A DNA stretch of 63,816 nucleotides, counting the filler, from Octopus bimaculoides (Eukaryota): NCBI RefSeq assembly GCF_001194135.2. It is 7 parts of 7 records of this genome, joined end to end, with 100 filler letters (N's around TTAATTAATTAA, not from the genome) between each part and the next. Parts side by side here need not be neighbours in the genome. Positions count along the whole stretch, not along the records: positions 1 to 26,139 come from NC_069008.1; 6 more parts are not named here. One strand, written 5' to 3'. Shown here in pieces: positions 1-38,550 of this stretch. The notes beneath the pieces are model-generated. The model saw nothing but the letters and a program-made list of their open reading frames with translations. It did not search any database and was not told the origin of the DNA. Each line of letters opens with the position of its first letter. Position 1 is the first letter of the stretch. Position numbers and translations under genes: made by a program.

Positions 1-392
1 GAACCTTAATTTTAAATATTTAAAAGGAATGAATAAAAAGGATTTTTGTCAAGTTTTTTTTTTTTAAGTTGGAATTTATTAAAAGAAATGAATGATGAAA
101 TTTTTAAAATGTCACAAAATAAATTAATTTCATTTTTCTCTTTTTACATGGCGAGTAATGAAAGAAAAAGCGGCAATATACGATATAACTGCTATTTCTA
201 GCTATCGGATTATCGCAAAGCGATCACTTTGTTAAATCGGATTAAATTTCGTTTGACTGCAACTGTAAACTGGCTTGATAATGATGTCTAACTAACGCAG
301 TTGATCCCTCCTGCTCATTGTTTCTGGCGCTCATATCTGTTACATTTTGGTGACCTGCTGACATGAAAAACGTCACATTTTGGTATACTTAC

Positions 393-532
393 CTTTGCAA
401 AAGGCTCGAATTGTTAAATTCCGCTATGTTGGAGCTAATACACATACTTCTCGACTTGTCTCTGTTAAGCTACAATGCTTGCACCAGCAATCGTTCGATA
501 TTGGTACACGACATCATTCACATGCGCACGCA
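393..532 (-). promoter_or_regulatory. Candidate promoter and non-coding first exon of a minus-strand gene continuing left of the window
   Basis: Strong minus-strand donor AAG|GTAAGT (exon ends 393) about 130 nt from a CpG-containing NRF1-like motif CATGCGCACGCA (521-532); same layout as the ZNF first exon at 25954-26063. Confidence 0.35.
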
Positions 533-600
533 GAACCTTCTCATGACAGACGTGTGATTCTCAGCAATATTTTATTTTTCTTACCTATGGACCCTTACGT

Positions 601-981
601 GGAGGCGCAATGGCCCAGTGGTTAGGGCAGCGGACTCGTGGTCATAGGATCGTGGTTTCGATTCCCAGACCGGGCGTTGTGAGTGTTTATTGAGCGAAAA
701 CACCTAAAGCTCCACGAGGCTCCGGCGGGGGACGGTGGCAAACTCTGCTGTACTCTTTCACCACAACTTTCTCTCACTCTTTCTTCCTGTTTCTGTTGTG
801 CCTGTAATTCAAAGGGTCAGCCTTGTCACACTGTGTCACGCTGAATATCCCCCGAGAACTACATTAAGGGTACACGTGTCTGTGGAGTGCTCAGCCACTT
901 GCACGTTAATTTCACGAGCAGGCTGTTCCGTTGATCGGATCAACTGGAACATTCGTCGTCGTAAGCGACGGAGTGCCAACC
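601..981 (+). mobile_element. Full-length tRNA-derived SINE with 14-bp target-site duplication
   Basis: tRNA-like head with A box (TGGCCCAGTGG) and B box (GGTTTCGATTCC); perfect flanking duplication ATGGACCCTTACGT at 587-600 and 982-995. Confidence 0.9.
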
Positions 982-2839
982 ATGGACCCTTACGTTACCA
1001 TTACAGAAAAGTTGCTTTATACACAGGACTACAACTATGGTAGCTTGGAAGTGACAAAAATTCGATAGCCACCCAAAATTTTGTCTCTCATGACAAATCA
1101 GAGCTTGCATTCTTCCACAAATCCATATGGAACCTTTGTCACATAAATACTTATAGTCACTCAAAAACTCTTTCAAAGCATGCACTTATTTTTTTCTCTT
1201 CGTTTAAGTTTCAGGTAATTAACACAAAACACTCCATGCATTCAAGTTTGTTATTTCTTAATTTGTTTGTTTCCTTTTCATATCTTTCTGTTAACAATAA
1301 TCTCTTCCATTCAAACCTTATTTCTTCACATAAAAGCACGTTTTGTAACACAAATTTAATGCCACATTCAATCCATCACGACAAGTAATTGCCACGCATG
1401 CATGGTTTTATGATGTTCCATTCTGTCGGCTCGCATATTATCTTTCATGCACACTTATCAGAAACTGTCTTATTCTTCCATGGTTTGTGCAACATATTTC
1501 GCCTGAATATTTGCAGTTCTACATCTTTTGTTCAACAAGAAAATAAAAAACATTCATACATACTTACCCTCAGATGTGTTAAACTATTTCTCATTCTTGG
1601 CTGTGTACATCTGATGCCTTCTTGAACCATAGAATGTGTCACTGGCTTCCTTGCTTCACCAGACATCCTAACCACTTATCCGTAAGCGCAGGAAAGAAAT
1701 TTGCTTATCGTGTGCAAAAATAGTTTTTTGGAAGGATGTTGAAAGCCCCAAAGTTTTAGTGCCTGCACTTTACAAACACATTTGTTCAACATCAATTGTA
1801 TTGGGGTGAGCAATAGGACAATGTAATCAATAAATGATTAAATGATCAATGTAATGATAAATAATGTAAAAGCTGAAGATTACAGGCCACACTGTCAAGA
1901 AGATAAATGAGTGAGAAGGCAGAGAGATAGAAAGACAGAGAGGCACTGATAAACAGATTGACAGGCAGGATTGTGAGTCAAGGAGACAGACAAACTGGGA
2001 GAGGAGTAAAGCTGTGAGAGCAGAACAGGTCCTTCAATTTAGAGGAGCTGCATGGCTATTCTGAATTAAGAAGAGGAGGGAAGGATCATGAGGAATCTCA
2101 TGGATCTCAGAAAGAGATTAACATAGTGGTAATGAAGTGTCAGACTTGGCCATCAACATACAAGAATGAATGGGGTAAAGGGAAGAAAAGTGTGGGAGAA
2201 TTGGTGGAGGCTGCAAGAATGTATGAGGGTTAGGTGGAAGGGTGAAGAGATGTAAAAAGTAGGCAATCTGCAATGATGCAAGACACATAGGGAGGGAGAG
2301 ATGGAGTAGGAGGTGACTGAGAATTCAGAGCAGCAGAAGAGTAATGATGATACAGTAGACAGGAGAAGGACAACACAAGTGACATAATGTTGGATAATTT
2401 GCAGGAACAGGTACAGAAGAGTGGGGCAGGATTGATGTAATACATACAAGCATAGTGAATAAACGATTTTTATTACAAATAATACAGCAGTAAGTTACCA
2501 AAGTTACCACAATTATGTCAACACAGTAGTAGTTATATGTAAAACAGCATAATTACATAACTTCTCACTAAATAAACTTAGACGATAACTGTGTATATTG
2601 GTTTTACAATAAAGGTATGGCATGCCTTGCTTATGTAATGTAAAAGGTGACTAAATGGCTGGCATCAAGAAAAGCATTAAGCTTTCAAAGATTATTTCAA
2701 AATAGGAAACAAAAGATTATTGATTAGGAAGAGTCGAGGGTACATATTGCTTCAGTGAATAAAAAATTGACTTGAGAGGTTTATCATTGTGTGAGATAAT
2801 GAATTTGGATAATAATACAGTTATACTTCTAAGTGGATA

Positions 2840-3376
2840 GCTAAGTGGGGAGATAATCTTTTGCCAGGGAATGATTTCTCAGAGATATCACAATATCACT
2901 TTTCTCCTGTCTGAATACATTTGTGAGTATGTAAAACGTTTCTTTGAGAAAATGATACATCACAGATGTCACAGTGATATGGTTTATCTCCCATATGAAT
3001 GCATAAATTAGTAAAATGAAACCTTCATGTGAATGATTTACCACAGATAATACAGCTATATTGATTTCTTGTATAAATATGTTTGTAACTAAGGTATTTA
3101 AATTACAGAATGATTTACTACAGATATCACATTGGTATGGCCTCTTTTGTGTATGAATGTTTGTGTCTACATAAAGCACCATTTATATAGAATGACTTAC
3201 AATGGATGTCACAGTGATATGGACTTTCTCATGTATGAACACATATGTGTTTAGTAAAGTCAGTTGAGAGAATGATTCGCTACAGATATCAGTCATATAG
3301 CTTCTCTGTATGAATGTGCTTAGATTTAGTTAAATGAGTACTTTCAGAAAAATATCTAACACACTGATATAGCTAA
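2840..3376 (-). pseudogene. Decayed C2H2 finger array downstream of the ZNF1 stop codon
   Basis: 84-nt finger periodicity and motifs (e.g. KRPYQCDICSKSF) persist, with frameshifts and stops. Confidence 0.8.
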
Positions 3377-4234
3377 TCACCTGTGAGTACGTTTGTGTTT
3401 AGTTAAGTTACCAGATTGAGAGAATGATTTACCACAAATATCACACTGATATGGCTTCACACCCATATGAATACGTTTATGATTAGTGAGACCGTCATTT
3501 CTAGAGAATGATTTACCACAGATGTCACACTGATAGGGTTTTTCTCCTGTATGAGTACGTTTATGTTTAGTCAAGTGACCAGATTCAGAGAATGTTTTAC
3601 CACAGATATCACAGTGATATGGTTTTTCTCCTGTATGAGTACGTTTGTGGTAAGTTAAGTGAACAGATTCAGAGAATGATTTACCACAGATATCGCAGTG
3701 ATGTGGCTTCTCTCCTGTATGAATACGTTTGTGACTAGTGACAGCATCATTTCTAGAGAATGATTCCCCACAGATGTCACACTGATAGGGTTTTTCTCCT
3801 GTATGAATACGGATGTGTCTGGTTAAGTTGTGAATATCAGTGAATGGTTTCCCACAGATATCACAGTGATAAGGATTTTCACGTGCATGAATACATTTGT
3901 GTGTAGTCAAGAGACTACTTCTAGTGAATGATTTACCACAAATATCACAGTGATATGGTTTTTCCCCTGTATGAGTACGTTTGTGGTTACTTAAGTGACC
4001 AAATTCAGAGAATGATATACCACAGATATCACACTGATATGGCTTCTCTCCTGTATGGATACGTTTATGTCTACTGAGACCATCATTTTTAGAGAATGAT
4101 TTACCACAGATATCACAGCGATATGGTTTCTCATCTCTATTAATACATTTGTGTTTAATGAGGTTACGTTCCAGAGAAAATGATTTTTGACAGACACCAC
4201 AATGGTATGAAGATTTTTCAGTCTCTTTTTGCAT
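3377..4234 (-). CDS. C2H2 zinc-finger protein (ZNF1), 285 aa, 9 canonical fingers plus 1 degenerate N-terminal finger, no effector domain
   Basis: Open frame from ATG 4234 (MQKETEK) to TGA 3377; CxxC-12-HxxxH repeats with TGEKP linkers. The ORF-track start at 4258 is a TTG. Confidence 0.92.
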
Positions 4235-4402
4235 CTCTTCAACAAAATAATGTATCAATCCTTTAAGTCTGTAACATTATTCATTGTTTCAATAGTTTTC
4301 TCTTCTCAGAACAATGTTTATTTTGTTGTTTCACTTTTTACTGTTCATTTATTTCAAATGTTTTATGGCTAATAATCCATCAATTCTGATTTTCATCAAT
4401 AT

Positions 4403-4659
4403 CTGAAAATGCCACAAACATATTTGAAACTTCATCAAAATTTAATTATGAGAAGGCAATTTCATCCCGTACATAATGCAGACTGTACAGGAGAGAAATG
4501 CTGCCATTAATCTTCATTCAGAAGAAATATTTCACTGTAGTTTACCATTGAGTTATATATTTGTTGCATGTAACGTTTTTCTGTAGTCTTTAAGAGGTAA
4601 TTAATGTTGATGATTAATTTGATGTAAGAAATTCTTTGATGTCACAGTTGTCTGATATT
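4403..4659 (-). other. ZNF1 5'UTR exon (4546-4659) and 143-nt intron (4403-4545)
   Basis: Acceptor TATTTCAG at 4660-61, donor TG|GTAAAC at 4545, acceptor TTTTCAG at 4403-04. The same sites and an identical 143-nt intron recur upstream of ZNF2. Confidence 0.55.
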
Positions 4660-4841
4660 CTGAAATAATAGAGAAACAACAGTATAAGATATAGAGGATA
4701 TCTTAATAGCAGAGATAGAATAGTGGAAGTACTACTCCATTTCTACAAAGATAAATTGTAGAAGTAAACAACTGAACTTTACTTTTCAATTTGTTATTAA
4801 AAGAATGTCACACAACATAATGCAAAGCCTATATCACATAT

Positions 4842-5057
4842 CATCATCATCATCGTTTAACGTCCGCTTTCCATGCTAGCATGGGTTGGACGATTTGACT
4901 GAGGACTGGTGAAACCGGATGGCAACACCAGGCTCCAGTCTGATTTGGCAGAGTTTCTACAGCTGGATGCCCTTCCTAACACCAACCACTCAGAGAGTGT
5001 AGTGGGTGCTTTTACGTGTCACCCGCACGAAAACGGCCACGCTCGAAATGGTGTCTT
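4842..5057 (-). mobile_element. 5'-truncated RTE-type LINE 3' end with (GAT)n tail
   Basis: Near-identical to the 3' end of the RT-bearing element at 39268-41812. Confidence 0.8.
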
Positions 5058-5074
5058 ATATATATATATATTGC

Positions 5075-5235
5075 CCCTCTTCCAAAATTCACTTGTCCAT
5101 GATAAAAAGTACTCCTCTAGTACTGTTCTGACCTCATCTACAGAATTCATATTTTTTCCACCCAAATAATTTTGAAGACTGCAGAATAAATAACAATTGC
5201 ATGGGACAATGTCCGGCATATATGATTCCCCCATT
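5075..5235 (-). mobile_element. Mariner transposase C-terminal fragment
   Basis: PDIVPCNCYLFCSLQNYLGGKNMNSVDEVRTVLEEYFLSWTSEFWKRG matches the mariner SPDLAPSDY-LF-SL and FW-RGI region. Confidence 0.7.
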
Positions 5236-5804
5236 ACATAATTACTGTAAAGTGTCAATATTTATAAAATCATGAAATATATCCAGTAGAAAAGGATAAA
5301 ATAATTAATAGAATTTATCAATAAAATAAACGAATTAAAAACCCCTACAAGTAGCTCTCTCTCTCTTTGCCCCTTTATTTCCCTCCTCTATCACCCTCCT
5401 CTCAATCTGTTTACCCTACCATACTCATTCTTTTCTTTTACTTCACAGTATTGTAGTGGAGAAGGTAACTTCGGTAGTGTTGGTACCAAGTACTCTGTGA
5501 AAAGTGATTGGCCGTCTGACAACGTAGTAAAGAAAGGACACTTTAGTTATATTGAAGACAATGCAGTCTATCTAGTGCTTGTGCCATCATAAAATATACT
5601 CAATACATTTTGTAAAGCATTTGGTGTTAAAGAGGGAATCTAGCTGTAGAAACAGTGCCAAGAATTTCTGCCATGAAATAGTAAATAAAATGTTAACAGC
5701 TTTAACAGGTAATTGTAGACAATCGAATACCACAGACACATTGATGCCTGTTTCTAGAGTAACAAACAAAGCTGTTATCTGCTTAAACCACACCATGTGT
5801 ATTT

Positions 5805-6010
5805 AACTTTTATCTTTTACTTGCTTCAATCATTAGACTGCAGACATGCAGGGGCAGCACCTTGAAGAAATCTGAGTTGAATGTATCAACCCCAGTATTT
5901 TTTTTTTTAAAGTCTGGAACTTATTCTATTGGTCTCCTATGCTGAACCACTAAGTTACAGGGACGGAAACAAATCAGCACTGGTTGTCAAGTGATGAGAG
6001 GGGAGAAACA
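5805..6010 (-). mobile_element. Diverged 3' half of the abundant tRNA-derived SINE (family B)
   Basis: Similar to the 3' part of the copies at 12156-12540 and 50820-51228. Confidence 0.65.
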
Positions 6011-7689
6011 CAGACATATGTATGTGTGTATATATATATGTGTGTGTGTGTGTGTGTATACCCATATTTGAATTCTTAAAAACTCAAATATGGGTACAAA
6101 TTGTAAAACCCACAACATTTTATTCCTCTCTCTGTCCCTAAAATATACTACTGTGATTTTAAACCTTATTTAATTTTCTAACAATTTTTGATTTGTATGG
6201 AATCTTAACCCCTTTTCAACTATATACATACATATATATACCTCTCTCTTCCTTACTCTATCATCCCATCTATGCTCTGATCCCTGCTCCTTGGAAGTAT
6301 ACCTTGGCCCCTCGTAGTCATCACTCTCATTGTCTCTCAATCTCTCTCTTTTGTTCATCCCTTGGCTGGGTAACTATGTATCTCTTCTACAGTACACACC
6401 TGTTTTTGCCTTCATTCTTGATCACTCTCTCTCCTTCTTTCTCCTGCTCTTATCTCTGGCCAGGTAACCATGTATCGATCTCCTTTACAATTGCTCCTGG
6501 CGTCTTTCATATTAACTCTCTCTCCTCAGGATAACCGCAAATCTCCTCTTCAGCCCTCATTCTTGAGCAGTATCTCTCTTTCTCTTGCTCTTCCATCCGT
6601 CTAGATAACCATGCATTTCCTTTACAGCAGCACACCTGCACCTGCCCTCTTTCTTGTTTAACTCTGTCCTCTTCTCTGGCTCGTACGTACATAAAAAAGG
6701 GTGCGAGAAAGGGGGAAGGTATTGGGAATGAAGTCGAAACAAAAAACATGCTGAGAACGAATGTATGCGTTCACGGACACACACATATAGACAGAAAAAC
6801 GAACTACGGGACGAGGGGTGACGGAGATGGGTTTAATTGCAAACTAAACAGGAAGTTCTATTACAGAGACACGAATTGACAAAAATAATTATACTGATTT
6901 TACAATAAAAATTCTCATTCTACAGCAAATGTAGGCAATTTACTTGGCGGAGGTAAAAAATATGTACACCACCCGTTTTCGGCGTAACAAATACCCTAAT
7001 CCTAACCTTAAATACCGGGTGGACGTATTCTTTACTTTCGCGATTTACTTTACGTAACACGCAAAAGTTATGCATAAACTTTTAAAAATAATAGATCAAC
7101 ATTTCAAACTGTGGAATTTTTCCAAAACTATTACGTGTTTTCCTACCAACATTATTACCGTATCCTTGAAACGTCACATTAGTCAATTTTCTATACACAT
7201 TATGACATAGCTAAACTTACCGTTTTCAAAATGTGAACAGCGAGACAGTACCCGTTGGAAACGACAGTTTGTCTAAGTTGTTTCCCTTTATAAAATTTAC
7301 TTCCTGAATTATCCAACAGATGGCTCTACTCACTTTCTTTTCTTTTTTGTTTATATTTAAATATAAACAATATGAGAGATCACTGTGTGGAACCCGTGAA
7401 TGCTAAAAATAAACGTCATTTCACTTCACTTTCCCAACTCTCTTTCTCCCGGGAAGCGATGTTTTCATTCCCTGCCGGGAAATTCCATATTTTTTTGAGG
7501 CGGTAAGCTGGCAAAATCATGAGGACGTTCTTAGTTCAAATTCCGCCCAAGTCGACTTTGAGAACTGCTGAAGATATATGAAACTACTGAATAGTGAAGG
7601 ATAAGATGTTTCTCTCATGAGAAACATCATTTGTCACTTTTGCGGTAATTGTTAAGTATAAGGAGTTTTAAAAAGTAGACAAAAATTAA

Positions 7690-8128
7690 GGGGGAGATAA
7701 AAGTGAACAAATGTCTTGCTCGTCTTTATTGAATTACCATCAACACTGCCAACTTCCATTGGGTTTTGTTGAAGCCAAACGTCACATACTTCACAACAGA
7801 AATTACACCAATCTAGGACTGTAGTCCGACTGTTTATGAAACGCATGTGTGACCAGCAATAAATGATCAAAACGATATTGTACAGTGAAATATGGCTTCT
7901 TTCGAAGAACAAAGAGTTATGAACTGATATCCTCCTTTTACAGACCCACGTTTTCCCATCAATAGTGTCACCACGCGTAGTAAGGACACATGGTGAATTA
8001 CAATTTTCACAAGTGCACATATTCATAATTAGCTGANNNNNNNNNNTGTCACCACGCGTAGTAAGGACACATGGTGAATTACAATTTTCACAAGTGCACA
8101 TATTCATAATTAGCTGACGCCGTGCCAA
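7690..8128 (-). mobile_element. Merlin / IS1595(ISXO2)-like DNA transposase fragment
   Basis: CENC zinc-ribbon, FFERSHISL-IIYCWS and TTVLDWCNFCCEVC-L-P-EVG motifs just upstream of where the DDE core would start; truncated. Confidence 0.65.
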
Positions 8129-10404
8129 TCAGTGAAGAATTTTGTCTTCTGATTCGGTTAATATGAGTGATATTCCAAGATTGATTCACAGTTGAGGACT
8201 TCATGTTCAGGAACAATGAATTGCGGTGCCGCTGGTCTTTCACATGCCATTCCAATCAATTCCAAAGTAAAGAATGATGGAACATACTTCGGTGTAAGTA
8301 AAGAATGAGAACCTAGTTATCTCCCCCTTAATTTTTATTTACTTTTTTAAAATCCATATAATGAACAATTACCGCTAAAATCTGAAAGAACTATATTCTT
8401 TTCTTTTCTAGGGANNNNNNNNNNNNNNNNNNNNNNNNNNNNNNNNNNNNNNNNNNNNNNNNNNNNNNNNNNNNNNNNNNNNNNNNNNNNNNNNNNNNNN
8501 NNNNNNNNNNNNNNNNNNNNNNNNNNNNNNNNNNNNNNNNNNNNNNNNNNNNNNNNNNNNNNNNNNNNNNNNNNNNNNNNNNNNNNNNNNNNNNNNNNNN
8601 NNNNNNNNNNNNNNNNNNNNNNNNNNNNNNNNNNNNNNNNNNNNNNNNNNNNNNNNNNNNNNNNNNNNNNNNNNNNNNNNNNNNNNNNNNNNNNNNNNNN
8701 NNNNNNNNNNNNNNNNNNNNNNNNNNNNNNNNNNNNNNNNNNNNNNNNNNNNNNNNNNNNNNNNNNNNNNNNNNNNNNNNNNNNNNNNNNNNNNNNNNNN
8801 NNNNNNNNNNNNNNNNNNNNNNNNNNNNNNNNNNNNNNNNNNNNNNNNNNNNNNNNNNNNNNNNNNNNNNNNNNNNNNNNNNNNNNNNNNNNNNNNNNNN
8901 NNNNNNNNNNNNNNNNNNNNNNNNNNNNNNNNNNNNNNNNNNNNNNNNNNNNNNNNNNNNNNNNNNNNNNNNNNNNNNNNNNNNNNNNNNNNNNNNNNNN
9001 NNNNNNNNNNNNNNNNNNNNNNNNNNNNNNNNNNNNNNNNNNNNNNNNNNNNNNNNNNNNNNNNNNNNNNNNNNNNNNNNNNNNNNNNNNNNNNNNNNNN
9101 NNNNNNNNNNNNNNNNNNNNNNNNNNNNNNNNNNNNNNNNNNNNNNNNNNNNNNNNNNNNNNNNNNNNNNNNNNNNNNNNNNNAATAAAAGAAAACAATG
9201 ATGAAATTGAAAAAAATGTCAAAAAATAAATAAATTTTTTTTTTTCATTGAGATTAATGAAAAAAGCGGCATTATGCAATATAACTGCTATTTCTAGCAG
9301 TCGGATTATGGCATAGCAAAAAGTTAGTTCAGTCACCAGTCGGTGACGACTCAACGAGTTGTCACACCACAACGAAGTCTGGCTGACCAGCTAGAAACTT
9401 GATCAGAGGGAGTAATGAAGCTTATTGTCAGCAACTGTGAGACAACGTCCCACACCCTACAACTCTCACTAGCTCTAATTCTATTCTCTTACAACATCAT
9501 TCTATCACTATCTATGAATTACTACTAACAATTCGTATATGCCAAACTATGCAAAGAAACACTCTACCACATTTTTCTTTTGCCTGCTCTCGGATGTTAT
9601 AGTCTGCCCGGCGAGGCAAGGTATTGTGATGTAATGGTAAATAAATACTTTCTTAAAACTTCGTGCATTGTTCATCTTTCGTATCCTGCAACATACTGTT
9701 ATAACAACTATTCTTAACCGTTACATATATATTGAGAAAAGCATTGTTGCTGTGAGAACGATTATCACCTATGCAAATAATATTTTTCTACATAATTCTA
9801 TTTGATTTTGTAGTAGTAGTAGTAGTAGTAGTAATGATAGTAATGAAAGGCATATACACAAAGCTAAAATAAAATTTAATTTAATAACCTGACAAATTTA
9901 TATTTCAACAAAATAACAGAGTTATTTCCCTTGCTTATCGTTTGTGTCTATGTGAACAAAGAAAAAAAATCATTTTAATTCCATAAACCAAACTTTAATG
10001 AGTATTTATGCCAAATTTTGGTGAAAATCCGTTCAGCCGCTTTCCAGTAATTTTGCAAAGACGAGCGACTACAATACCCTGCATTTGCTAACGTGTGCAG
10101 GGCAATAATTTTGTTTATGTGTGAAGTTTGGTGCCTTCAAACAGAAACACTTGGCAGTGTCTTCATGGTTGTCCAAATTATCTTCCTTTACATCAACGTT
10201 CTCTTTGTTTTTCGTATCTTATGTGAATGGCTAAAGAAGTACCAGACAATATATAATCAAATGAAAGTCTCCCCAAAGAAGAGCTTCAATATAACTACAG
10301 ACCAATGATTAAAATGGATAATAGAAAAGAAAGAATCAAAAGAATCTCTAATGTTTTATAAACAAAAGGAAGTTGATCCATGTCTAAAGCACAACACAGA
10401 CATT

Positions 10405-10790
10405 TTATTGAGTTTTTATGTGTAAGCTGGTTATAGACAGATAGCCTGAGGGTGTATTGCGACTGATGAATCCAGCCTTGTTCATTCTCAAAACGATTGT
10501 ATCATTAGCTTTAAGTTGGTATGTAAACGATGATTGCATTATGGTGTATTGTGACATATCTAAAGAACTACAACTTTTCTTCATAAATACATAATCTTCT
10601 TCATTATTTTTTTTCTGAAACATCAGGGTTACAACTGCTAGAAGGGTATCTTTGGGAATGAGCAATTGTACTGCATAGCTTATTTCATAAATACCATCTT
10701 GTGGCACAAATACGCAGGTTTCATTGACTAACTGAAAGTTGCCTACATTCTGGCTCTCATCTTTCTTCCAATGTAAATAATTTACTCCTT
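10405..10790 (-). CDS. TNF-superfamily ligand, exon 4 (most of the TNF homology domain, 386 nt including TAA)
   Basis: Acceptor TTTTTCTTTTTCAG at 10791-92, phase 1. Translation EGVNYLHWKKDESQNVGNFQLVNETCVFVPQDGIYEISYAVQL...YTIMQSSFTYQLKANDTIVLRM...SGYLSITSL follows THD strands A' to H. Confidence 0.88.
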
Positions 10791-10807
10791 CTGAAAAAGA
10801 AAAAGAA

Positions 10808-11565
10808 TGGTATGGTCATGTGGCAAGAATGGATGAGGATAGCTGTGTGATAAAGTACTACACCTTAGCAGTTGAGGGAAGACCTGGGATGAGGTGGTGA
10901 AGCACGACCTTCGAACAGTAAGGCCTCACCGAGGCAATGACTAGTGACCAAGACCTTTGGAAATATGCTGTGCATGAAAAGACCTGGCAAACCAAGTGAG
11001 ACCATAATCTGCGGCCTCTACCAGGGGTGTAGGCAGCCCACTTTTACGTACCTTTCCTTCATTGGACACTAAACTCTGCTTGCGAAGACCTGTTGAGGCA
11101 TGTGAAATCGAAATCGAAGCAAAGTTTGATGACTGGCACCCGTGCCAACCTTTCCTTCACTGGACTCTAAACTCTGCGTGCGAAGACCTGTTGGGGCAAG
11201 AGAAACTGAAATTGTAATTGAACCAAATTCGATGACTGGCACCTGTGCCAGTGGGGCACTAAGAGAACCATCCAAGCGTGATCATTGCCAGAGCAGTTGT
11301 CTGGCTTCCGTGCCAGTGGTACATAAATAGCACCATTTGAGTGTGATCATTACCAGCGTCGCCTTACTGGCACATGAAAATACATTTGAGCGAGGTCATT
11401 GCCAGTGCCACTGGACTGGCTCCTGTGCAGGTGGCATGTAAAAAACACCATTTTGAGAGCGTGGCCGCTGCCAGTATCGCCTGACTGGCTCTTGTGCCGG
11501 TGGCACATAAAAGCACTCGCTACACTCTCAGAGTAGTAGTAGTAGCAGTCCCATATGTCCCTAAT
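10808..11565 (+). mobile_element. RTE LINE 3' fragment (ORF end plus 3'UTR with internal ~60-bp repeats) in TNF intron 3
   Basis: WYGHVARMDEDSCV and WDEVVKHDLR C-terminal RTE motifs; 3'UTR shared with 39268-39790. Confidence 0.8.
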
Positions 11566-11647
11566 TACAATAACAGTTGACCCATGTCTTTCAAAATAAT
11601 TAACTCATGCTTGTCATAGCACTTAATTACAATGGTAACATACTTCA

Positions 11648-11757
11648 CCTAATTTCCCTCCTGCTAACCCTAACCCTGTCCCTAACCCTAATTTCCCTCC
11701 TGCTAATCCTAACCCTAACCCTAATTTCCCTCCTGCTAATCCTAACCCTAACCCTAA
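11648..11757 (+). repeat. Minisatellite containing telomeric CCCTAA units
   Basis: Three to four copies of CCTAATTTCCCTCCTGCTAA(C/T)CCTAACCCTAAC. Confidence 0.8.
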
Positions 11758-11926
11758 CAGCACAACTTAACCCAAGTATGAAATAGCAATCACATGTCTA
11801 TAATGAAAGTATTTTAATTAACACTGTAATAGTAAGAATTAGCTTAAATCTCTAACTTTAAATATCTAAGCAGGTAATTCGAATTACGAGAAAAAGTATG
11901 CAATAAAACTGTATAAATTAGCTTAC

Positions 11927-11974
11927 CTAAATCTGTGTAACCACTTGATTTTAGGTGGAAGAAGGCATGGTGGA
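11927..11974 (-). CDS. TNF-superfamily ligand, exon 3 (48 nt, THD strand A: FHHAFFHLKSSGYTDL)
   Basis: Acceptor CTTTGTATCTTACAG at 11975-76, donor TAG|GTAAGC at 11926; phase 1 to phase 1 keeps the frame open. Confidence 0.85.
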
Positions 11975-12155
11975 CTGTAAGATACAAAGAAGCAAACCAT
12001 AAGAAAGGAATGTTTTAATATCAAACAGAAGACTATTCAAAGAAAAGGGTACTTCCTGATGCATTTCATCTATTTAATACTTCAGGTTATCATCTGATAA
12101 ATGAGTATGCAATATATTAACTGTTTCATGATCATCATTATCATAATGAAAATGA

Positions 12156-12540
12156 CCGAGTGGCTTTGTGGTAAGTAGCTTGCTAACCAACCACATGGTC
12201 CCGGGTTCAGTCCCACTGCATGGCACCTTGGGCAAGGTGTATAGCCTCGGGCCAGCCAAAGCCTTGTGAGTGGATTTGGTAGACGGAAACTGAAAGAAGC
12301 TTGTCATATATATGTATATATATATATATGTGTGTGTGTGTGTATTTGTGTTTGTCCCCCTAGCATTGCTTGACAACTGATGCTGGTGTGTTTATGTCCC
12401 CGTAAATTAACAGTTCAGCAAAAGAGACCGATAGAATAAGTACTAGGCTTACAAAGAATAAGTGCCCGGGGTCGATTTGCTCGACTAAAGGCGGTGCTCC
12501 AGCATGGCCGCAGTCAAATGACTGAAACAAGTAAAAGAGT
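12156..12540 (+). mobile_element. tRNA-derived SINE, family B, near full length
   Basis: Head GAGTGGCT(T)TGTGGTAAG...GGGTTCAGTCCC, central (TA)/(TG) tract, 3' end GACTGAAACAAGTAAAAGAG. Confidence 0.9.
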
Positions 12541-12732
12541 ACAAGAGAGTACATGCAGAACAATTACCACACGTTAATGAAAGAGGGCTAAGATTATATA
12601 AACATCTATATATTATACACATCACATCGGAGTTTCATGAGCTGATAGTACAATTATACAAAACATACAGAGAAGGCTTCATCCTATGAAAGTGTCATCT
12701 AAAGCCATGGTCCAGTTAATTATTACTCTTTT

Positions 12733-12944
12733 TTTACTTTTACTTGTTTCAGTCACTTAACTGCGGCCATGCTGGAGCACCACCTTTAGTCGAGCAAATC
12801 GACCCCAGGACTTATTCTTTGGAAGCCTAGTACTTATTCTATCGCTCTCTTTTGCCGAACCGCTAAGTTACAGGGACGTAAACACACCAGCATCGGTTGT
12901 CAAGCGATGTTGGGGGGAACAAACATATACACACACACACACAC

Positions 12945-12991
<47 letters not shown>

Positions 12992-13152
12992 ACGGGCTTC
13001 TTTCAGTTTCCGTCTACTAAATCCACTCACAAGGCTTTGGTCAGCCTGAGGCTATAGTAGAAGACACTTGCCCAAGGTGCTATGCCGTGGGACTGAACCC
13101 AGAACCATGTGGTTGGTAAGCAAGCTACTTACCACACAGCCACTCCTGCGCC
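12733..13152 (-). mobile_element. tRNA-derived SINE, family B, full length, inverted relative to 12156-12540
   Basis: Reverse complement of the same consensus, starting GGCGCAGGAGTGGCTGTGTGG at 13152. Confidence 0.9.
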
Positions 13153-13371
13153 TTTTTGTAGACATTTCTTTCATATTTAATGAGGTGGGTAGTTTTACCA
13201 TTCATTTCTTTAGTATGTCTGTTACATATCAAGGTGAAAGTATTGTTGCCTATTTTAAGTCTGTAGTATATTGAAGACATGTTCAGTGATTTCATTAACA
13301 TTAAAATGTTCCAGATTCAGAGGATTTTATAGACACACGCAAGGTGAAATGGTGATAATATATATACTTAC

Positions 13372-13465
13372 ACTGCAGAGGAGGTGATATCATAGGCAGT
13401 GGTGACGTTGGTGCCACAAGCTGTGGAGGAGTTGACATCACAGAAGGCAGTAAATGATAATGCGT
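13372..13465 (-). CDS. TNF-superfamily ligand, exon 2 (94 nt, Pro/Ser/Thr-rich stalk)
   Basis: Long polypyrimidine acceptor TTGTTTTCTTTTGACTTTAG at 13466-67, donor AGT|GTAAGT at 13371; encodes THYHLLPSVMSTPPQLVAPTSPLPMISPPLQ, phase 0 to phase 1. Confidence 0.85.
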
Positions 13466-13626
13466 CTAAAGTCAAAAGAAAACAAGACGAGAACAGAAAA
13501 ATGAAGATAAGATGGTGACTGGTGTGCTTTCTATTGCTTTCATTATATTACTGTCCCCTTTAAGGCTTGTCTGTGTTTTGTAAGGATACACAGACCTGAT
13601 ACACTTGTCAGACTTATGAGATATAT

Positions 13627-13658
<32 letters not shown>

Positions 13659-13729
13659 TAAGGCTACCGTTGATATCATGTTAAGAAAAATATCTTAATA
13701 TCTTTATTTTTCAATCAGCATAAACTAGT

Positions 13730-14915
13730 AATTAGTGACTTTAGGCTCCAGGTCAGAAGGCTGCCAAGAAGTAAACCAATCTGGAAAAGAAGGATTTGGA
13801 AGCTTAAGGACACTTCTTATGATCAGAGATTTAGGGACATCCTAATTGTGAAATTCGATAAAAGGGTGGAGGAGCTAAAGACTTGTGGTATAGAGGGCAA
13901 CTAGGAATTTCTGAGGGACAGCTTGCTGAGTGCCACAGACCAATTCTGTGGCTGGTGCAAAGTCTTATCAAGACCTAGGGTAACATGGTGGTGGAGGATG
14001 CAGTAGATGGGGCCATTAGAGCTAAGAAACAGGCCTGGAAGAATGGGGGGTAGCAGGGAACTGTATCAGATTGCCAGAAGGGATGCTAGGAGACGTATAT
14101 ATCTAGACAGGGGAGAAGCAGAAAAGACATGAGATGAAGTGGTGAAGCATGATCTTTGAACTTTGAGCCTCACAGTGGCAATGACTAGTGACCAAGACCT
14201 TTGGCAATGTGCTTGAGAAGACCCAACAAGCCAAGTGCACCCATGCTGGTGGCACGTAAAGAACACCTTTCAAGCATTCGGCCTCATGGAGATAAAGTGG
14301 TCGAGTTCCTTTTGAGTGTTGCGCCTCATGGAGGCAATGACCAAGACCTTTAGCATTATGTCATGCTTGAGAAGAAGACCCATCAAGCTGAGCAAAATCG
14401 CAGTCATGACAGACACCAGTGTCATGCAAATTGGGATCCATGCCAGTGGCATGTAAAACCAACCTGGTGTCATGCAAAGGCATTCATGCCAGTGGCATGT
14501 TAAAGCTCCCATTACATTCTCAAAGTGATTGGCGTTAGGAAGGGCATCAGCCAGCCATAGAAAGCCATGCCAAATCATACTGGAATCTGGTGCAACTGTC
14601 CAAACCATGCCAGCATGTACAATGGATGTTAAATGATGATGATGACGATGATATACGGAGGTGTGCAGTGCGTGGGAGGACCCGGCAGGGCAGGGCAGGT
14701 AGGAGCATGGTCTGTGACCTCTGCCAAAGGTGTGGCCGGCTCACTAATTCATATCTTTGCTTCATTGGACACTGAGGGGCCCTGCTTGAAGGACTTGTTG
14801 AGCCAGGTGAATTTGGGATTTGAGGTTTGAGGTCTGAAATCGAAGTCAAACCGAGTCCAACGCCTGGCACCTGTGCCAGCCTCTCCTTCATTGGACACTG
14901 AATTCTGCTTGCGAG
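13730..14915 (+). mobile_element. Internally deleted RTE LINE in TNF intron 1, plus an extra 3'UTR piece (14740-14915)
   Basis: 13730-14130 aligns with the post-endonuclease region at 41350-41770, then jumps to the ORF end, 3'UTR and (GAT)n tail near 14640-14650. Confidence 0.75.
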
Positions 14916-16321
14916 GACCTTTTATTTTATAATTTNNNNNNNNNNNNNNNNNNNNNNNNNNNNNNNNNNNNNNNNNNNNNNNNNNNNNNNNNNNNNNNNN
15001 NNNNNNNNNNNNNNNNNNNNNNNGTTATCAGTGCAGCTACATCAGGATGCATCCTTTTGGCCAGTTTCAAAGCAAACTCAATGGAGGTAGTTTTTTGTTA
15101 GTTAGTGGGCAAACGTCAGTGATAGGTAGCACCCATAAGTTGGAATTTCTCCATTAAGACGGGGATTTTTCTGATTTTTTTTTTACACGGGTACTCTTAG
15201 AAATGTTTTTAGCAGAACACACACAAAAAAAAATTCTGAAAAAAAAAGGTTTCGTTTTGTACCCTCGCTTACACCCCCACCCCCCGGACCGATTTTGGTC
15301 GATTTTGTGGGCACTATGCACTTAAAAAAATCTTTCCATTAAAAAAAGAAAAAAAATTTCGACCCCCATATTTATGAATTTCTTTCTTAACGTGACACAT
15401 GGCATTTAAAAAAAACAAAACATTTTTCCATTACTCAGTTAAATACGTTTAAGGGGAAAATAACAAAGAAACAAGGAAGGTATCAGATGGTCGTGTGATG
15501 TGTAAAAAACGATAGCTAAATTGCCCTTAACATTCACAATAGTAAGAGCATATTCAACACCGTATTTATGATAATTTGTTTCTCACACCATGAAACATGC
15601 AATCTCTTTTTAAACCTGTTTCTGTTACTCAAACGAAAAATAAATGAATCTAAAAACTATTTTTTCAAACTTTTTCCATTACGCTCAACCAAAAAAGATA
15701 AACTATGAATGTCTGTCTCTCACTAAAAAGATATTTCCCATCGTTTCCAAGGGCATTGTGAAAGAAAATCTGTTTTTATCCAGCGAAAACAGAGAAATTT
15801 CCAACTTACGTGTGCTACCTATTGCTGACGGCCACCACTTAGTGTTCGGGGAGGGGCAGATGTGTAGAAACTGAAACTTTATCCATTTGCAGTTGATTTT
15901 TAATTCATACCGATCGCAGTCTATTTAGGTCAAGGTTAAAATCAGTGTTTTGGCATGGTCCTTTCTTTATTTTAGTGGTTGGGTTTGCTGTAGTTTTGAT
16001 TTCGAGTCTAGTTCCTATAGTGAAGAGTTCTTAATTGTTTATATATTCATTTTTATGGTTGTATTGCTGATGTATACGTTGGATATGGTACATGTTAGTT
16101 TGTTAAGGAGAACTATTAATTTTTTTAATTTCAGGGTATGTTTTTCTAACCGTCATATCACACTCAACTGTGGGTGGGGCATCGGCTCTCGAGAACCATC
16201 TTAATACTTTCCCAATACTGTTCAAGTCTTCTATTTACTAATGTGTTTGTTGAAGTAAATATCAGGTATATGCACAGGTTACATCTATTTCCACCTTCCC
16301 CCTCTCTCTCTCTTTACACAC

Positions 16322-16470
16322 ACACAGGTGGTTATGTGGTAAGAAATTTACTTAACTACATGGTTCTCAGTCCAGTCCCACAGCATAGCACCTTCGTCAA
16401 GTGTCTTCTACTATAGCCTTGGGCTGACTGAGGTCTTGCGAATGGATTTGGGAAATGGAAAATGAAAGAA
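16322..16470 (+). mobile_element. 5' fragment of family-B SINE
   Basis: Diverged head through GAAAGAAGCCCG followed by (TG)n. Confidence 0.7.
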
Positions 16471-16657
16471 GCCCGTTGTGTGTGTGTGTGTGTGTGTACA
16501 AGTGTATTAGTTTGACGCTCAGTGAAAGGAGAAAGTTTAACTCTTCGAGCATAGCTCTTCGCCAGAAAGGAGAAGGGGAAAAGTCCAAATAAGGTGAAAA
16601 AGAAGAAATCGCCAACGGCATGCGTGTAATTACATTGATTTGTGTGCGTGTGTGTGT

Positions 16658-16985
16658 AGGCCTAGTGGTTAGGGTGTTGTACTCACAATCGCGAGATCGT
16701 GGTTTCAATTCCTAGACTGGGTGGTGTTCTTGAGCAAAGCACTTCATCTCACGTTGCTCTGCGATCACTTCAACACCTGACACAGTGCACAAGTTCAGTC
16801 AATGTCGATTTGATGGAGTGAGTGCGCAGTATGAACATTTGATCACTATAAACAAATCATTTGAGCAGGTAGTTTGATACTAGGCTTTAAAACAAATAAG
16901 TTCTGGGGTCAATTTATTCGACTAAAAACCCTTCAAAACTGTGCTTCAGCATGGCCACAGTCAAATGACTGAAACAAGTAAATAT
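16658..16985 (+). mobile_element. tRNA-derived SINE with a different body but a family-B-like 3' end
   Basis: A box GGCCTAGTGG, B box GGTTTCAATTCC, ends CAGTCAAATGACTGAAACAAGTAA. Confidence 0.7.
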
Positions 16986-17392
16986 ATATATATATATATA
17001 ATCAATAATTATAACGATTTGGAGTATGGAGACAGTTGCATTTGCAACCAGGCATAATTTTCTGTGGAGTTCAAGTTCATTCCACCAGATGCCCTCTTCG
17101 CTTCGAGACATGTTTTCTCTTAATTGTTTAACTTTTTATGACCTATAGAAAAAAGGATGGCAGTAGTACGAGACGAAAATGTAATGTTGGGGGTGATGTT
17201 GCGAGTCGGGGACGGACGGATGGGAGGTGAACTTTAAAAATTTAACATTAAAAAATCTATTTCTCTCGTTTAGGAAAAAAACCTACCCTATTGTTCTGAA
17301 ATATGTAATACAAAAGAAAAAAATTCTGGCCAAACAGAAAATTCCAAGTTATTCAAACCCCAGCTGAAAGTAAATAAAGCTGAGAGTTTTAC

Positions 17393-17638
17393 CTGACTTA
17401 GGATAATAGCAGTCACCACACCCGCTAAAAGAAATATCTGAAAACAAAACGTTCCATATTTATAATATTTCGAGTCAAGAAACATCTGAGTTCTAGATTT
17501 TTCTTTCTGGGTTGACGGTTCATTTAATAATGAATTCACTATAATTTCATTTCCCTCGGTTGATGGTTGCATTGTTCTGTATGGGATATCTTGCTGGGCT
17601 GGTACTTGATTTGTTCTATTCTGTATTCTCGTCACCAT
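17393..17638 (-). CDS. TNF-superfamily ligand, exon 1 (82 codons: cytoplasmic tail and type II transmembrane helix)
   Basis: ATG at 17638 in AAGATGG context; hydrophobic GTFCFQIFLLAGVVTAIIL at residues ~62-80; donor CAG|GTAAAA at 17392, phase 0. Exons of 246+94+48+386 = 774 nt give a 257-aa ORF. Confidence 0.85.
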
Positions 17639-20299: not shown

Positions 20300-21534
<1,235 letters not shown>

Positions 21535-21790: not shown

Positions 21791-22869
21791 CTTAATTCTG
21801 AACTTGAGCTGATATATAGCAATGCATATACAGAAATTAGGAGCACAGTAGTGGCATATGGAAATTAAATTCAAAACAGATTATGTACACAAAATAAGCG
21901 TGAAGTACTGTATAAATGGTAAAGATCCCCTTCGGTCATGGATGACCACAGGATCACACCTAGGAAGTTCCCCTCCGAAAAACAAGTCCAGCCAAGGTCA
22001 TGTATGGAAGACCAGTAGTCACCCATGCATACCATCCTCCCCTCTCAACGCCATGGATGTTATCCAAGGAAAAGGCAAAGGGTAATACAGCTTGGCACCA
22101 GTTACATTGCAATCATTTCTACAGCCAAATGAACAGGATCCATTGGCACCGTAGCAGACAAGGTAACCTCAGTAATCTTGGTGCCAAGTACTCTGTGAAA
22201 AGTGATTGGCCATCGAATACAACATAACAGAGACAGGACTCTTTAGCTGTATTGAAGACAGGACAATCTGTCTACTGCTTGTGCCATCACAAAATACACT
22301 CAATACATTTTGTAAAGCATTTGGTATTAGAGAGGAGGATCAATGCCAAGAATTTTTGCCATGAAATAATAAATAAAATTCTAATAGCTTTCAAAATTTG
22401 CAAATTTCAGGTAATTTTAGCCAATTGAATATCACAGACGCATTGGTGCCTGTTTCTATAGTAACAAGTAAAGCTTAAACCACATCATGTGTATTTAACT
22501 TTTATCTTTTACTTGCTTCTATTATTAGACTTCAGCCATGCAGGGGCAGCATCATGAGGAAATTTTAGTCCAATGTATCAACCCCAGTGGTTTTTTTCTT
22601 AAGCATATTAGGAATCCACTATAGCGGTCTTTCCTCTTATTAATCGTAATATAATTTTTAAATCTTGTAATGGGAGAAATCGATTTGTAAACAATGTCGG
22701 AGTCAGCAGTTGTGCCGATAAAAGTTGGTTGTAAGATGGGAAAGATGAACAATGCATGAAGTTTTCAGGAAATATTTATTTACCGTTACGTTACAATACC
22801 TTGCCTCAACGGGCAGGTTATGATAGATTCAAAAGCATGCGAAGTAACGTTTGTGTCCTCTTCATTGTT

Positions 22870-23382
<513 letters not shown>

Positions 23383-25089
23383 CTATAGCTTCTCTCCTGT
23401 ATGAATAGGTTTGTGTTTAACGAGACCATCATTTCTAGAGAATGATTTACCACAGATATCACAGTGATATGGTTTTTCTCCTGTATGAATACGTCTGTGC
23501 TTAGTCAAGGAACCAGATTCAGAGAATGATTTACCACAGATATCACACTGATATGGTTTTTCTCCTGTATGAATACGGATGTGTCTGGTTAAGTCATCAG
23601 TAGCTTTGAATGATTTACCACAGGTATCACAAGAACAGGGCCACTCACCTGTATGAATATATTTGTGTTTAGTCAAGCCATTACTTCTAGAGAATGATTC
23701 ACCACAGATATCACACTTATATGGTTTTTCTCCTGTATGAATACGTTTGTGTCTGGTTAAGACACCGGTAGCTTTGAATGATTTACCACAGATATCACAA
23801 GTATGGGGCCTCTCACCTGTATGAATATATTTGTGTCTAGTCAAGTCATTACTTCTAGAGAATGATTTACCACAGATATCACAAGAAAAGGGCCTCTCTC
23901 CTGTATGACTACGTATATGGATGCTTAAGCTTTCATTATAAGAGAATGATTTACCACAGACGTCACAATGATATGGTTTCTGTTGCATATGAACATACTT
24001 GTGTGAAGTTAATCTATTTAATTGACTGAATGACTTACCACAGACGTCACAAGAATAGGGCTTCCCACCTGTATGAACATATTTGTGTGCAGTCAACACA
24101 CTACTTGTGGAGAATGATTTACCACAGATATTACAAGGATAGGGCTTCTCTCCTGTATGACTACGTACGTGGACAATTAAGTGCGAAGTAATAGGGAATG
24201 ATTTACCACAGATGTCACACTGATATGGTTTCTCTTTCGTATGAATGTATTTGTGTGAAGCTAAGTTACTTGATCGAATGAATGATTTACCACAGATATC
24301 ACAATGATGTGTCATTTCCCCTGTATGAATGCGTTTGTGAATACGTAAAGAAGCTAAGCGAGGGAATGATTTACTACAGACATCACAATGATATGGTTTT
24401 TCTCCTGTGTGCACGCGTATGTGAAAAGTTAAATCACTCTTGTGAATGAATGATTTACCACAGATATCACAATGCATCATTTCTCCTGTATGAATGTGTT
24501 TGTGAGCACGTAAAGAAGCTACGTGAGAAAATGATTTACTACAGACATCACATTGATGTGGTTTTTCTCCTGTGTGAATGCGTATGTGAACAGTTAAACC
24601 ACTCTTTTGTGAGAATGATTTACCACAGATATCACAATGATGTGTCTTTTCTCCTGTATGAATGCGTTTGTGAGTACGTAAATGAGTTAAACGAGTGAAT
24701 GATTTACTACAGACATCACAATGATGTGGTTTTTCTCCTGTGTGAGTGCGTATGTGACCAGTTAGATGATGCTTCAGAGAAAATGATCTACCACAGATAT
24801 CGCAGCGGTAAGGTTTTGCTTCTGTATGAACACGTTTGTGAGAATATAATTCAATTCTTTGAGAGAATGATTTACCACAGATATCACAATGATATGGCTC
24901 CTTGTCCATATGAATGCGTCTATGTTTAGCTAAGCAATTCTTTCTAGAGAATGATTTACCACAAACATCACAGGGATATGGTTTCTCACCTCTATTAATA
25001 CATTTGTGTTTAATGAGCCTACTTTCCAGAGAAAATGATTTTTGACAAATACCACAATGGTATGGGGATTTTTCAGTCTCTTTTTCCAT
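23383..25089 (-). CDS. C2H2 zinc-finger protein (ZNF2), 568 aa, 19 canonical fingers plus 1 degenerate finger, no effector domain
   Basis: Open frame from ATG 25089 (MEKETEK) to TAG 23383; N-terminus and last fingers are homologous to ZNF1. Confidence 0.93.
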   Translation of the reverse strand: MEKETEKSPYHCGICQKSFSLESRLIKHKCINRGEKPYPCDVCGKSFSRKNCLAKHRRIHMDKEPYHCDICGKSFSQRIELYSHKRVHTEAKPYRCDICGRSFSLKHHLTGHIRTHTGEKPHHCDVCSKSFTRLTHLRTHKRIHTGEKTHHCDICGKSFSQKSGLTVHIRIHTGEKPHQCDVCSKSFSHVASLRAHKHIHTGEMMHCDICGKSFIHKSDLTFHIRVHTGEKPYHCDVCSKSFPRLASLRIHKRIHTGEMTHHCDICGKSFIRSSNLASHKYIHTKEKPYQCDICGKSFPITSHLIVHVRSHTGEKPYPCNICGKSFSTSSVLTAHKYVHTGGKPYSCDVCGKSFSQLNRLTSHKYVHMQQKPYHCDVCGKSFSYNESLSIHIRSHTGERPFSCDICGKSFSRSNDLTRHKYIHTGERPHTCDICGKSFKATGVLTRHKRIHTGEKPYKCDICGESFSRSNGLTKHKYIHTGEWPCSCDTCGKSFKATDDLTRHIRIHTGEKPYQCDICGKSFSESGSLTKHRRIHTGEKPYHCDICGKSFSRNDGLVKHKPIHTGEKL

Positions 25090-25259
25090 TTCTTCAACAA
25101 AATAATAAATCAATCCTTTAAGTCTGTAACATTATCCATTGTTTCAATAGTTTTCTCCTCTCAGAACAATGTGTTTATTTTCCTTTTTCACTTTTTATCA
25201 TTCATTTCTCCGTAATGTTTTACAGCTATTTTCACATCAACTCTGATTGTTGTCAATAT

Positions 25260-36400: not shown

Positions 36401-36641
36401 TTTTCACTTTTAAGTACACATGTAATGTACTCAGTTCTTTCTTTACTGTTCAGCAAGTATTATCTGAGTGACACAATGCAACACTCAAATACTTTTGACT
36501 GTCTTTAAACCTCTTATGCTATCTCTTTGTTGTATAGAGATTCTGTTGGTGTTGGTGTTAATGTGGAAGTTGCCAGTGGTGGCCAGTATCTTTCTACCTT
36601 TTGACATACATGCTGCTGATCTTTTCAAGTGTCCAGTCCAT

Positions 36642-36673
<32 letters not shown>

Positions 36674-37805: not shown

Positions 37806-38550
37806 GGATAAAATGTATATAAGATTTTATCAAGTAGCCAGTGTGCAAAACCAATTGAGGAAAAAATTATTAATACAAAGTATATAATTTTTTTCCTTAT
37901 ATATAAAATACATTATTATATCAAGGGCTATAACTGTAAGTAAAGCCTCATGCTGTGAGGGGACTCTAAAGTCAAACTACTTCAATAAATATACACAGAC
38001 ACCAAATTCGAGGGAATGAATGTAAGAGAAATTCCATATATCATTAATGATTTCATGGTCAGCATATATAATATGCTCTCCATTCATCAGTACAAACATC
38101 ATCAGGAAAATATAAATATAAACATCTATACATACCATGTGAACACAATGCATCCAGCAGAGCATATATAAATGTTGACACTTATATATCTATAGAAGGG
38201 GATTCTCTTTTGTGTTCATCTCAGCTACGTGTGTATGATCGGAACAACTCAGCACTGAATATATTCAAGGATAAAATCTATATAAGATTTTACAAAGTAG
38301 CTATCGTGCAGAACCAACTAAGGAATTTTTTCCTTATATACTAAATACATGAATGGAGGGCATTATTATATAAGTTGCCCATGAAATCATTAATATTATA
38401 CGACTAAACCTTTTTAAAAAAATTTCTCTTATGTTCATTCCCTCAAATTTGGTACCTGTATATATTTAATGAAGTAGTTTGACTTTAGAGTCCCTTCACA
38501 GCATGCAGCATTACTTATACTAATACCCCTTGATATAATAATGTATTATA
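37806..38550. repeat. Mixed direct and inverted duplication (A-B-C-A'-inverted B')
   Basis: 37806-37911 resembles 38269-38350 directly; 37908-38088 resembles the reverse complement of 38348-38550. Confidence 0.75.

Follow-up and report, generated by a model that had tools for sequence, protein, structure and literature searches.

For the TNF superfamily (TNFSF) of Octopus vulgaris, eight ligands of the Eiger type and four receptors of the Wengen type have been reported; six of the TNFSF paralogues of this species formed a monophyletic cluster with 100% support (preprint 10.1101/2024.07.27.603686). Here, LOC106878338 of the California two-spot octopus, Octopus bimaculoides, was analysed, a gene on the minus strand of a 63,816-nucleotide (nt) stretch of DNA joined from seven parts of the assembly GCF_001194135.2, filler included (hereafter the window). 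It was found that LOC106878338 very probably encodes a type II membrane TNFSF ligand of an octopod-specific clade, with a cytoplasmic tail of ~61 residues, a transmembrane helix, a Pro-rich stalk and a TNF homology domain (THD) of ~145 residues.

Gene model, annotation and predicted architecture

The gene model was traced in the DNA sequence, and all coordinates are positions of the window (Table 1). Four exons were recognized on the minus strand, with AG before exons 2-4 and GT after exons 1-3. The joined exons comprised 774 nt, which were open without a stop and encoded 257 residues up to the terminal TAA; the intron phases were 0/1/1, and an in-frame stop was present 11 codons 5' of the ATG. 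The splice-site check and the translation thus confirmed the four exons with canonical GT-AG sites and the single uninterrupted open reading frame (ORF) that a preliminary description of this DNA had given. The ORF list showed no more of the gene than exon 1, with read-through, and a part of exon 4. The second and third exons, of 94 and 48 nt, were too short for it, which explains why the same description had found two exons invisible there.

That description had also presented the gene as hidden, with an implied novelty, and this did not hold. The 257-residue product is identical over its full length (100%) to RefSeq XP_014783019.1 (O. bimaculoides LOC106878338 isoform X1), and the same protein is found in UniProt as A0A0L8G9I3, "TNF family profile domain-containing protein", a name of the source's own that reflects a match to the TNF profile of PROSITE, PS50049; another database label is "uncharacterized". 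The gene call in GCA_001194135.2 (chromosome CM046628.1) spans 7,234 bp, exactly the range found here, and its sequence is identical to that of the window. The gene model and the TNF-family label were therefore already public, and represent a correct call, not a discovery. A literature search by gene and protein accessions found no paper in the library searched that names LOC106878338, and a search of the cephalopod TNFSF literature found no characterisation and no experimental study of octopus ligands. LOC106878338 is annotated but its function is uncharacterised, and it belongs to an expansion of octopod paralogues that was already known.

Inspection of the protein revealed a single hydropathy maximum at residues 62-80, preceded by Lys57 and Lys60, and a Pro-rich stalk at about residues 88-112. 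The full-length AlphaFold2 model, built from a 5-sequence alignment, was unusable (predicted local distance difference test, pLDDT, of 38); a helix was placed in it at residues 59-82. A tail of ~60 residues, one transmembrane helix, a Pro-rich stalk and a THD had been proposed in the preliminary description, and the hydropathy and the predicted helix agreed with this layout, with the tail at ~61 residues. No furin site (R-x-K/R-R) was found in the protein. By prediction, the protein has a type II topology, with a cytoplasmic N-terminus, one transmembrane helix, an extracellular C-terminal THD and no signal peptide. Ligands of the TNFSF have this type II architecture, and secreted C1q-domain proteins do not.

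Evidence for a TNF homology domain

The C-terminal domain was assigned through relatives, profiles and a structural model. The paralogue P0005, which is 52% identical to the LOC106878338 product (homology at E=2.4e-49), matched Pfam TNF (PF00229) with 26.7 bits against a gathering cut-off of 23, and the orthologue and two further relatives reached 18.8-20.8 bits. Pfam TNF was matched by 5 of the 15 clade members, at least one of them above the cut-off, whereas Pfam C1q (PF00386) was matched by none of the 15. A single-sequence search of the PDB retrieved only lymphotoxin-alpha, with E=0.4. The clade profiles retrieved lymphotoxin-alpha (7dov) with E values of 2.4e-5 and 1.7e-5; the match took in strands A' to C, with their motifs L-x-W and P-x-D-G-I-Y. 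Residues L135, W137, G162, Y164 and I166 were invariant in the clade and aligned with the lymphotoxin-alpha motifs.

The domain-only AlphaFold2 model from 15 sequences (pLDDT of 85.9, predicted template modelling score of 0.82) was all-beta, with 11 DSSP strand segments; the THD of TNFSF ligands is a jelly-roll beta-sandwich of 10 strands. When this model was compared with the PDB by Foldseek, the best 50 matches were all TNFSF ligands (CD40L, RANKL, TNF-alpha, TRAIL, FasL and TL1A), with template modelling (TM) scores of 0.68-0.82, E values of 6e-9 to 8e-8 and identities of 11-17%; no C1q chain was among these best 50. The Pfam score of the paralogue, the match of the family profile to lymphotoxin-alpha and the Foldseek matches agree, and the assignment of the C-terminal domain as a THD, already made in the preliminary description, is sound.

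Several observations weigh against a TNFSF ligand. The query protein alone gave no match to Pfam TNF, and its only Pfam match was BclA_C, a family with a TNF/C1q-like fold, which was below threshold (19.5 bits versus a cut-off of 38). The canonical H-strand motif F-F-G-A-F is replaced by Y-L-S-I-T (S-Y-L-S-I-T in the clade), and the clade is without a conserved disulfide. At the level of the gene, RefSeq also annotates a THD-less isoform, and no transcript contig for LOC106878338 was found in the collections searched, the sole contig carrying the gene being genomic. The H-strand motif is not universal in the TNFSF, OX40L and GITRL being divergent members. The missed Pfam match of the query is in line with the divergence of the THD noted before, and the last strand of the model confirmed the earlier assignment of strand H (Table 1).

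The BclA_C match of the query would also fit a C1q-like domain or another non-TNF jelly-roll (gC1q, BclA-like or viral fibre knob). When the profile was searched against the PDB, adenovirus fibre proteins were matched with an E value of about 1, and the TNF, C1q, BclA-like and fibre-knob folds are known to resemble one another. However, Pfam TNF was matched by 5 of the 15 clade members and Pfam C1q by none, the best 50 structural matches were all TNFSF ligands, and a type II transmembrane segment without signal peptide or collagen G-X-Y repeats is TNFSF architecture, unlike that of C1q-domain proteins. A non-TNF jelly-roll was rejected on these grounds and is considered extremely improbable; the scoring of Pfam TNF against C1q that had been proposed as a check lent it no support.

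Two Cys residues and the N-glycosylation sequons NET and NDT had also been listed for the THD, and only part of this stood. The cysteines are C155 and C203. Cys155 is specific to O. bimaculoides, being replaced by Asp in the O. vulgaris orthologue and by Tyr in paralogues, and Cys203 occurs in a few clade members only; therefore, no conserved THD disulfide is implied. The orthologue no longer has the NET sequon of residue 152, and the NDT sequon (residue 225) is kept across the five closest family members. Thus NDT is a conserved feature, and the two cysteines and NET are not.

Conservation, isoforms and surroundings of the gene

The O. vulgaris/sinensis orthologue LOC115226699 has four coding exons with phases 0/1/1, of which the second measures 94 nt and the third 48 nt. 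In O. bimaculoides, the paralogue LOC106873363 is likewise made up of four exons with phases 0/1/1, its third exon again measuring 48 nt, so that the length and phase of exon 3 are kept in both genes. For the Octopus orthologue pair, the synonymous divergence (dS) was 0.16, and the ratio of non-synonymous to synonymous divergence (dN/dS) was 0.32 for the THD and 1.27 for residues 1-113 at the N-terminus. The THD exon was 93% identical to that of O. vulgaris, compared with about 82-84% for most aligned intron blocks. These results demonstrated that the THD is under purifying selection. An RNA-derived Logan contig of 1,277 nt (L004, SRR16213285) from a related octopus encoded an uninterrupted 225-residue relative and mapped to the paralogue gene in four blocks, the ends of which coincided with predicted exon ends. 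Splicing at the conserved positions was thereby demonstrated for the family, via the paralogue and not for LOC106878338 itself.

A decaying duplicate or non-functional gene, the 257-residue model being an annotation artefact not expressed as such, would be consistent with the N-terminal dN/dS of about 1.3, with the THD-less or truncated isoforms annotated in both species, with the finding of no transcript contig for the exact 257-residue protein in the collections searched, and with LOC106878338 being a dispersed copy that lies outside the main cluster of paralogues. Cytoplasmic tails and stalks of TNFSF ligands usually evolve fast, which counts against this view of the N-terminal part. Moreover, the ORF is intact, all splice sites and phases are kept in two species at the dS given above, and both the dN/dS of the THD and the higher identity of its exon than of most intron blocks speak for constraint. 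The pseudogene reading was rejected because of the intact ORF, the kept splice sites and phases and the purifying selection on the THD, and is regarded as very unlikely, leaving a gene for a TNFSF ligand as the preferred reading.

An exhaustive phmmer search of 1.84 billion representatives gave 24 matches at E <= 1e-3. Every identified relative belonged to Octopoda (O. bimaculoides, O. sinensis, O. vulgaris and Argonauta hians), and a profile search of a 5.8-billion-protein collection added no relatives outside octopods. The earlier suggestion of a lineage-specific ligand is thus a fair one, and that all detectable relatives are octopod fits the lineage-specific paralogue expansion noted in the preprint cited above. 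The one non-homologous phmmer match of which the sequence was read was P0025, a repetitive 2,246-residue protein resembling a bacterial surface protein; for two others (P0028 and P0030), the match was confined to the N-terminal, transmembrane and stalk region and broken into 5-10 short stretches per protein. One other chromosome holds most of the paralogues; LOC106878338 is a dispersed copy and has arrays of C2H2 zinc fingers on either side. On that chromosome (CM046624.1 of O. bimaculoides; L003, 17315-17667), the first exon of LOC106872472 was observed directly after LOC106873363. The RefSeq model of LOC106872472 (P0010, 315 residues) contains one and a half THDs and may have joined tandem genes into one model.

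RefSeq isoform X2 (XP_052833475.1, 168 residues) consists of exons 1-3 and a terminal exon within intron 3, and has no THD. This terminal exon lies in a locally duplicated unit of ~98 nt (window 11050-11212, copies 88% identical), of which a further copy (67%) was found at about 14703-14923, beside the assembly gap in intron 1. The local duplication of the unit and its copy in intron 1 suggest that the X2 terminal exon is an interspersed repeat that became exonised. For the orthologue in O. vulgaris/sinensis, the annotation likewise includes isoforms that are truncated or have no THD (P0007, P0019 and P0021). The tails of P0007 and P0019 mapped 10-12 kb downstream of the THD exon (L002, the orthologous O. 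vulgaris locus, 36595-36669 and 38545-38610), with weak counterparts at 7221-7304 and 4599-4658 of the window, upstream of a zinc-finger gene; these two isoforms are possibly read-through or chimeric transcripts.

It was also observed that a 412-nt block of intron 1 was as similar to O. vulgaris as the THD exon, with neighbouring intron blocks at 82-84% identity (Table 1). The block contained no ORF of more than 66 residues, an Rfam scan of the window identified no RNA family, and the block may be a conserved regulatory element. It was considered as an alternative exon of the short O. vulgaris/sinensis isoforms, but this was rejected, as their alternative N-terminal peptides do not map there; no placement of these peptides was obtained elsewhere in the compared loci.

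Runs of N were present in the window at 8037-8046 and 8415-9183, the third run lying inside intron 1 (Table 1). The orthologous O. vulgaris locus (L002) contains the gene without any gap, and both flanks of the intron 1 gap aligned collinearly with O. vulgaris intron 1, which is ungapped, without a change of order or orientation: in gene coordinates, 1-2261 aligned with O. vulgaris 1-3215, and 3512-4466 with 4166-6082. The unaligned stretch between these blocks, which includes the gap, contained dispersed repeat fragments. The orthologous proteins aligned gap-free over the exon 1/2 junction, and the O. vulgaris orthologue gave no hint of a missing coding exon at the gap. As the gap is intronic, its flanks are collinear and the orthologous protein is continuous, the reading frame is unaffected.

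The TAA stop sits inside an AATAAA hexamer (10401-10407), as in the orthologue (L002) and the paralogue (L003). Because the 3' untranslated region of the paralogue transcript is at least 410 nt long, the hexamer at the stop probably does not serve as the poly(A) signal. The C2H2 arrays flanking the gene comprised two long open ORFs (293 and 576 residues) and two fragments, and fit the large C2H2 expansion of octopus genomes. In an ORF at 7652-8128, which had no Pfam match, the same 23-residue peptide (QLIMNMCTCENCNSPCVLTTRGD) was encoded on either side of the run of 10 N (8037-8046), which suggests that sequence was duplicated in the assembly where scaffolds were joined.

Table 1. Features of LOC106878338 and its surroundings in the window
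Feature	Position	Strand	Remarks
Coding exon 1, 246 nt, residues 1-82	17393..17638	minus	Start codon 17638-17636; ends in phase 0, followed by GT donor
Cytoplasmic tail (~61 residues) and transmembrane helix (residues 62-81), within exon 1	about 17396-17455 (helix)	minus	Hydropathy, predicted helix
Intron 1, GT...AG	13466..17392	minus	Holds assembly gap 14936-15023
O. bimaculoides-specific repeat-bearing segment in intron 1	about 14237-15377	minus	
Block in intron 1, 412 nt	13716-14127	minus	93% identity with O. vulgaris
Coding exon 2, 94 nt, residues 83-113 and 1 nt	13372..13465	minus	Pro-rich extracellular stalk; O. vulgaris orthologue of same length and phase
Intron 2, GT...AG	11975..13371	minus	
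Coding exon 3, 48 nt, phase 1 to phase 1, residues 114-129	11927..11974	minus	THD start, strand A (HHAFFHLK...GYTDL)
Intron 3, GT...AG	10791..11926	minus	
Alternative terminal coding exon of isoform X2	11069..11187	minus	AG acceptor; inside locally duplicated ~98-nt repeat
Coding exon 4, 386 nt, residues 130-257 and TAA stop (10407-10405)	10405..10790	minus	Most of THD, strands A' to H; last strand GYLSITS at residues 245-251; 93% identical to O. vulgaris exon
C2H2 zinc-finger arrays, 84-nt tandem units	3377-4258, 20760-21038, 22869-23189, 23383-25113	all minus	Flank the TNF-like gene

Proposed function and comparison with known ligands

By analogy with established TNFSF biology, the THD would form a homotrimer on the cell surface and might be shed, by a protease other than furin, since the protein has no R-x-K/R-R site. 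The ligand may cluster a TNF receptor with cysteine-rich domains of the Wengen type, of which O. vulgaris is reported to have four, and such clustering could trigger signals of the TRAF/JNK/NF-kB type that act in immunity or cell death. The non-canonical H strand, the absence of a conserved disulfide and of a furin site, and detection only in Octopoda gave rise to a more speculative idea: the octopod clade would use a receptor or assembly mode other than the canonical TNFSF one, and the recurrent THD-less isoforms would be regulated decoys or signalling stubs. We consider this idea improbable. The biological gain of the present analysis is small, as the gene model and family label were public and the Octopus TNF-ligand expansion was already described in the preprint; it does show that a multi-exon gene with 48- and 94-nt exons can be rebuilt from raw sequence alone.

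The LOC106878338 product and its orthologue LOC115226699 (XP_036371275.1, CAI9742887.1) have 79% identity overall and 87% identity over the THD, with the same exons and phases. The orthologue differs in being 3 residues longer, in lacking Cys155 and the NET sequon, and in having an intron 3 of ~9.4 kb, compared with 1.1 kb in LOC106878338. The octopod paralogues (for example LOC106873363, LOC106872472/3 and LOC106880432 of O. bimaculoides, five loci of O. sinensis, and Argonauta hians) have the same architecture of type II transmembrane segment, stalk and THD and the same exon layout, with the common signature HHAFFHLK...L-x-W...PQDGIYEI...SSYLSITSL. They differ in that their THD identity is 24-63%, and they are clustered on another chromosome, at least partly in tandem; the cytoplasmic tail and stalk of LOC106878338 are longer than theirs.

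Compared with vertebrate TNFSF ligands (CD40L, RANKL, TNF-alpha, lymphotoxin-alpha, TRAIL, FasL and TL1A), the structure-based identity was no more than 11-17%, the H strand reads YLSIT instead of FFGAF, and neither a conserved disulfide nor a stalk furin site is present; but the jelly-roll THD (TM scores of 0.68-0.82), the type II topology, the A'-strand L-x-W motif and the C-strand P-x-x-G-x-Y motif are common to both. Drosophila Eiger would be comparable in the same features.

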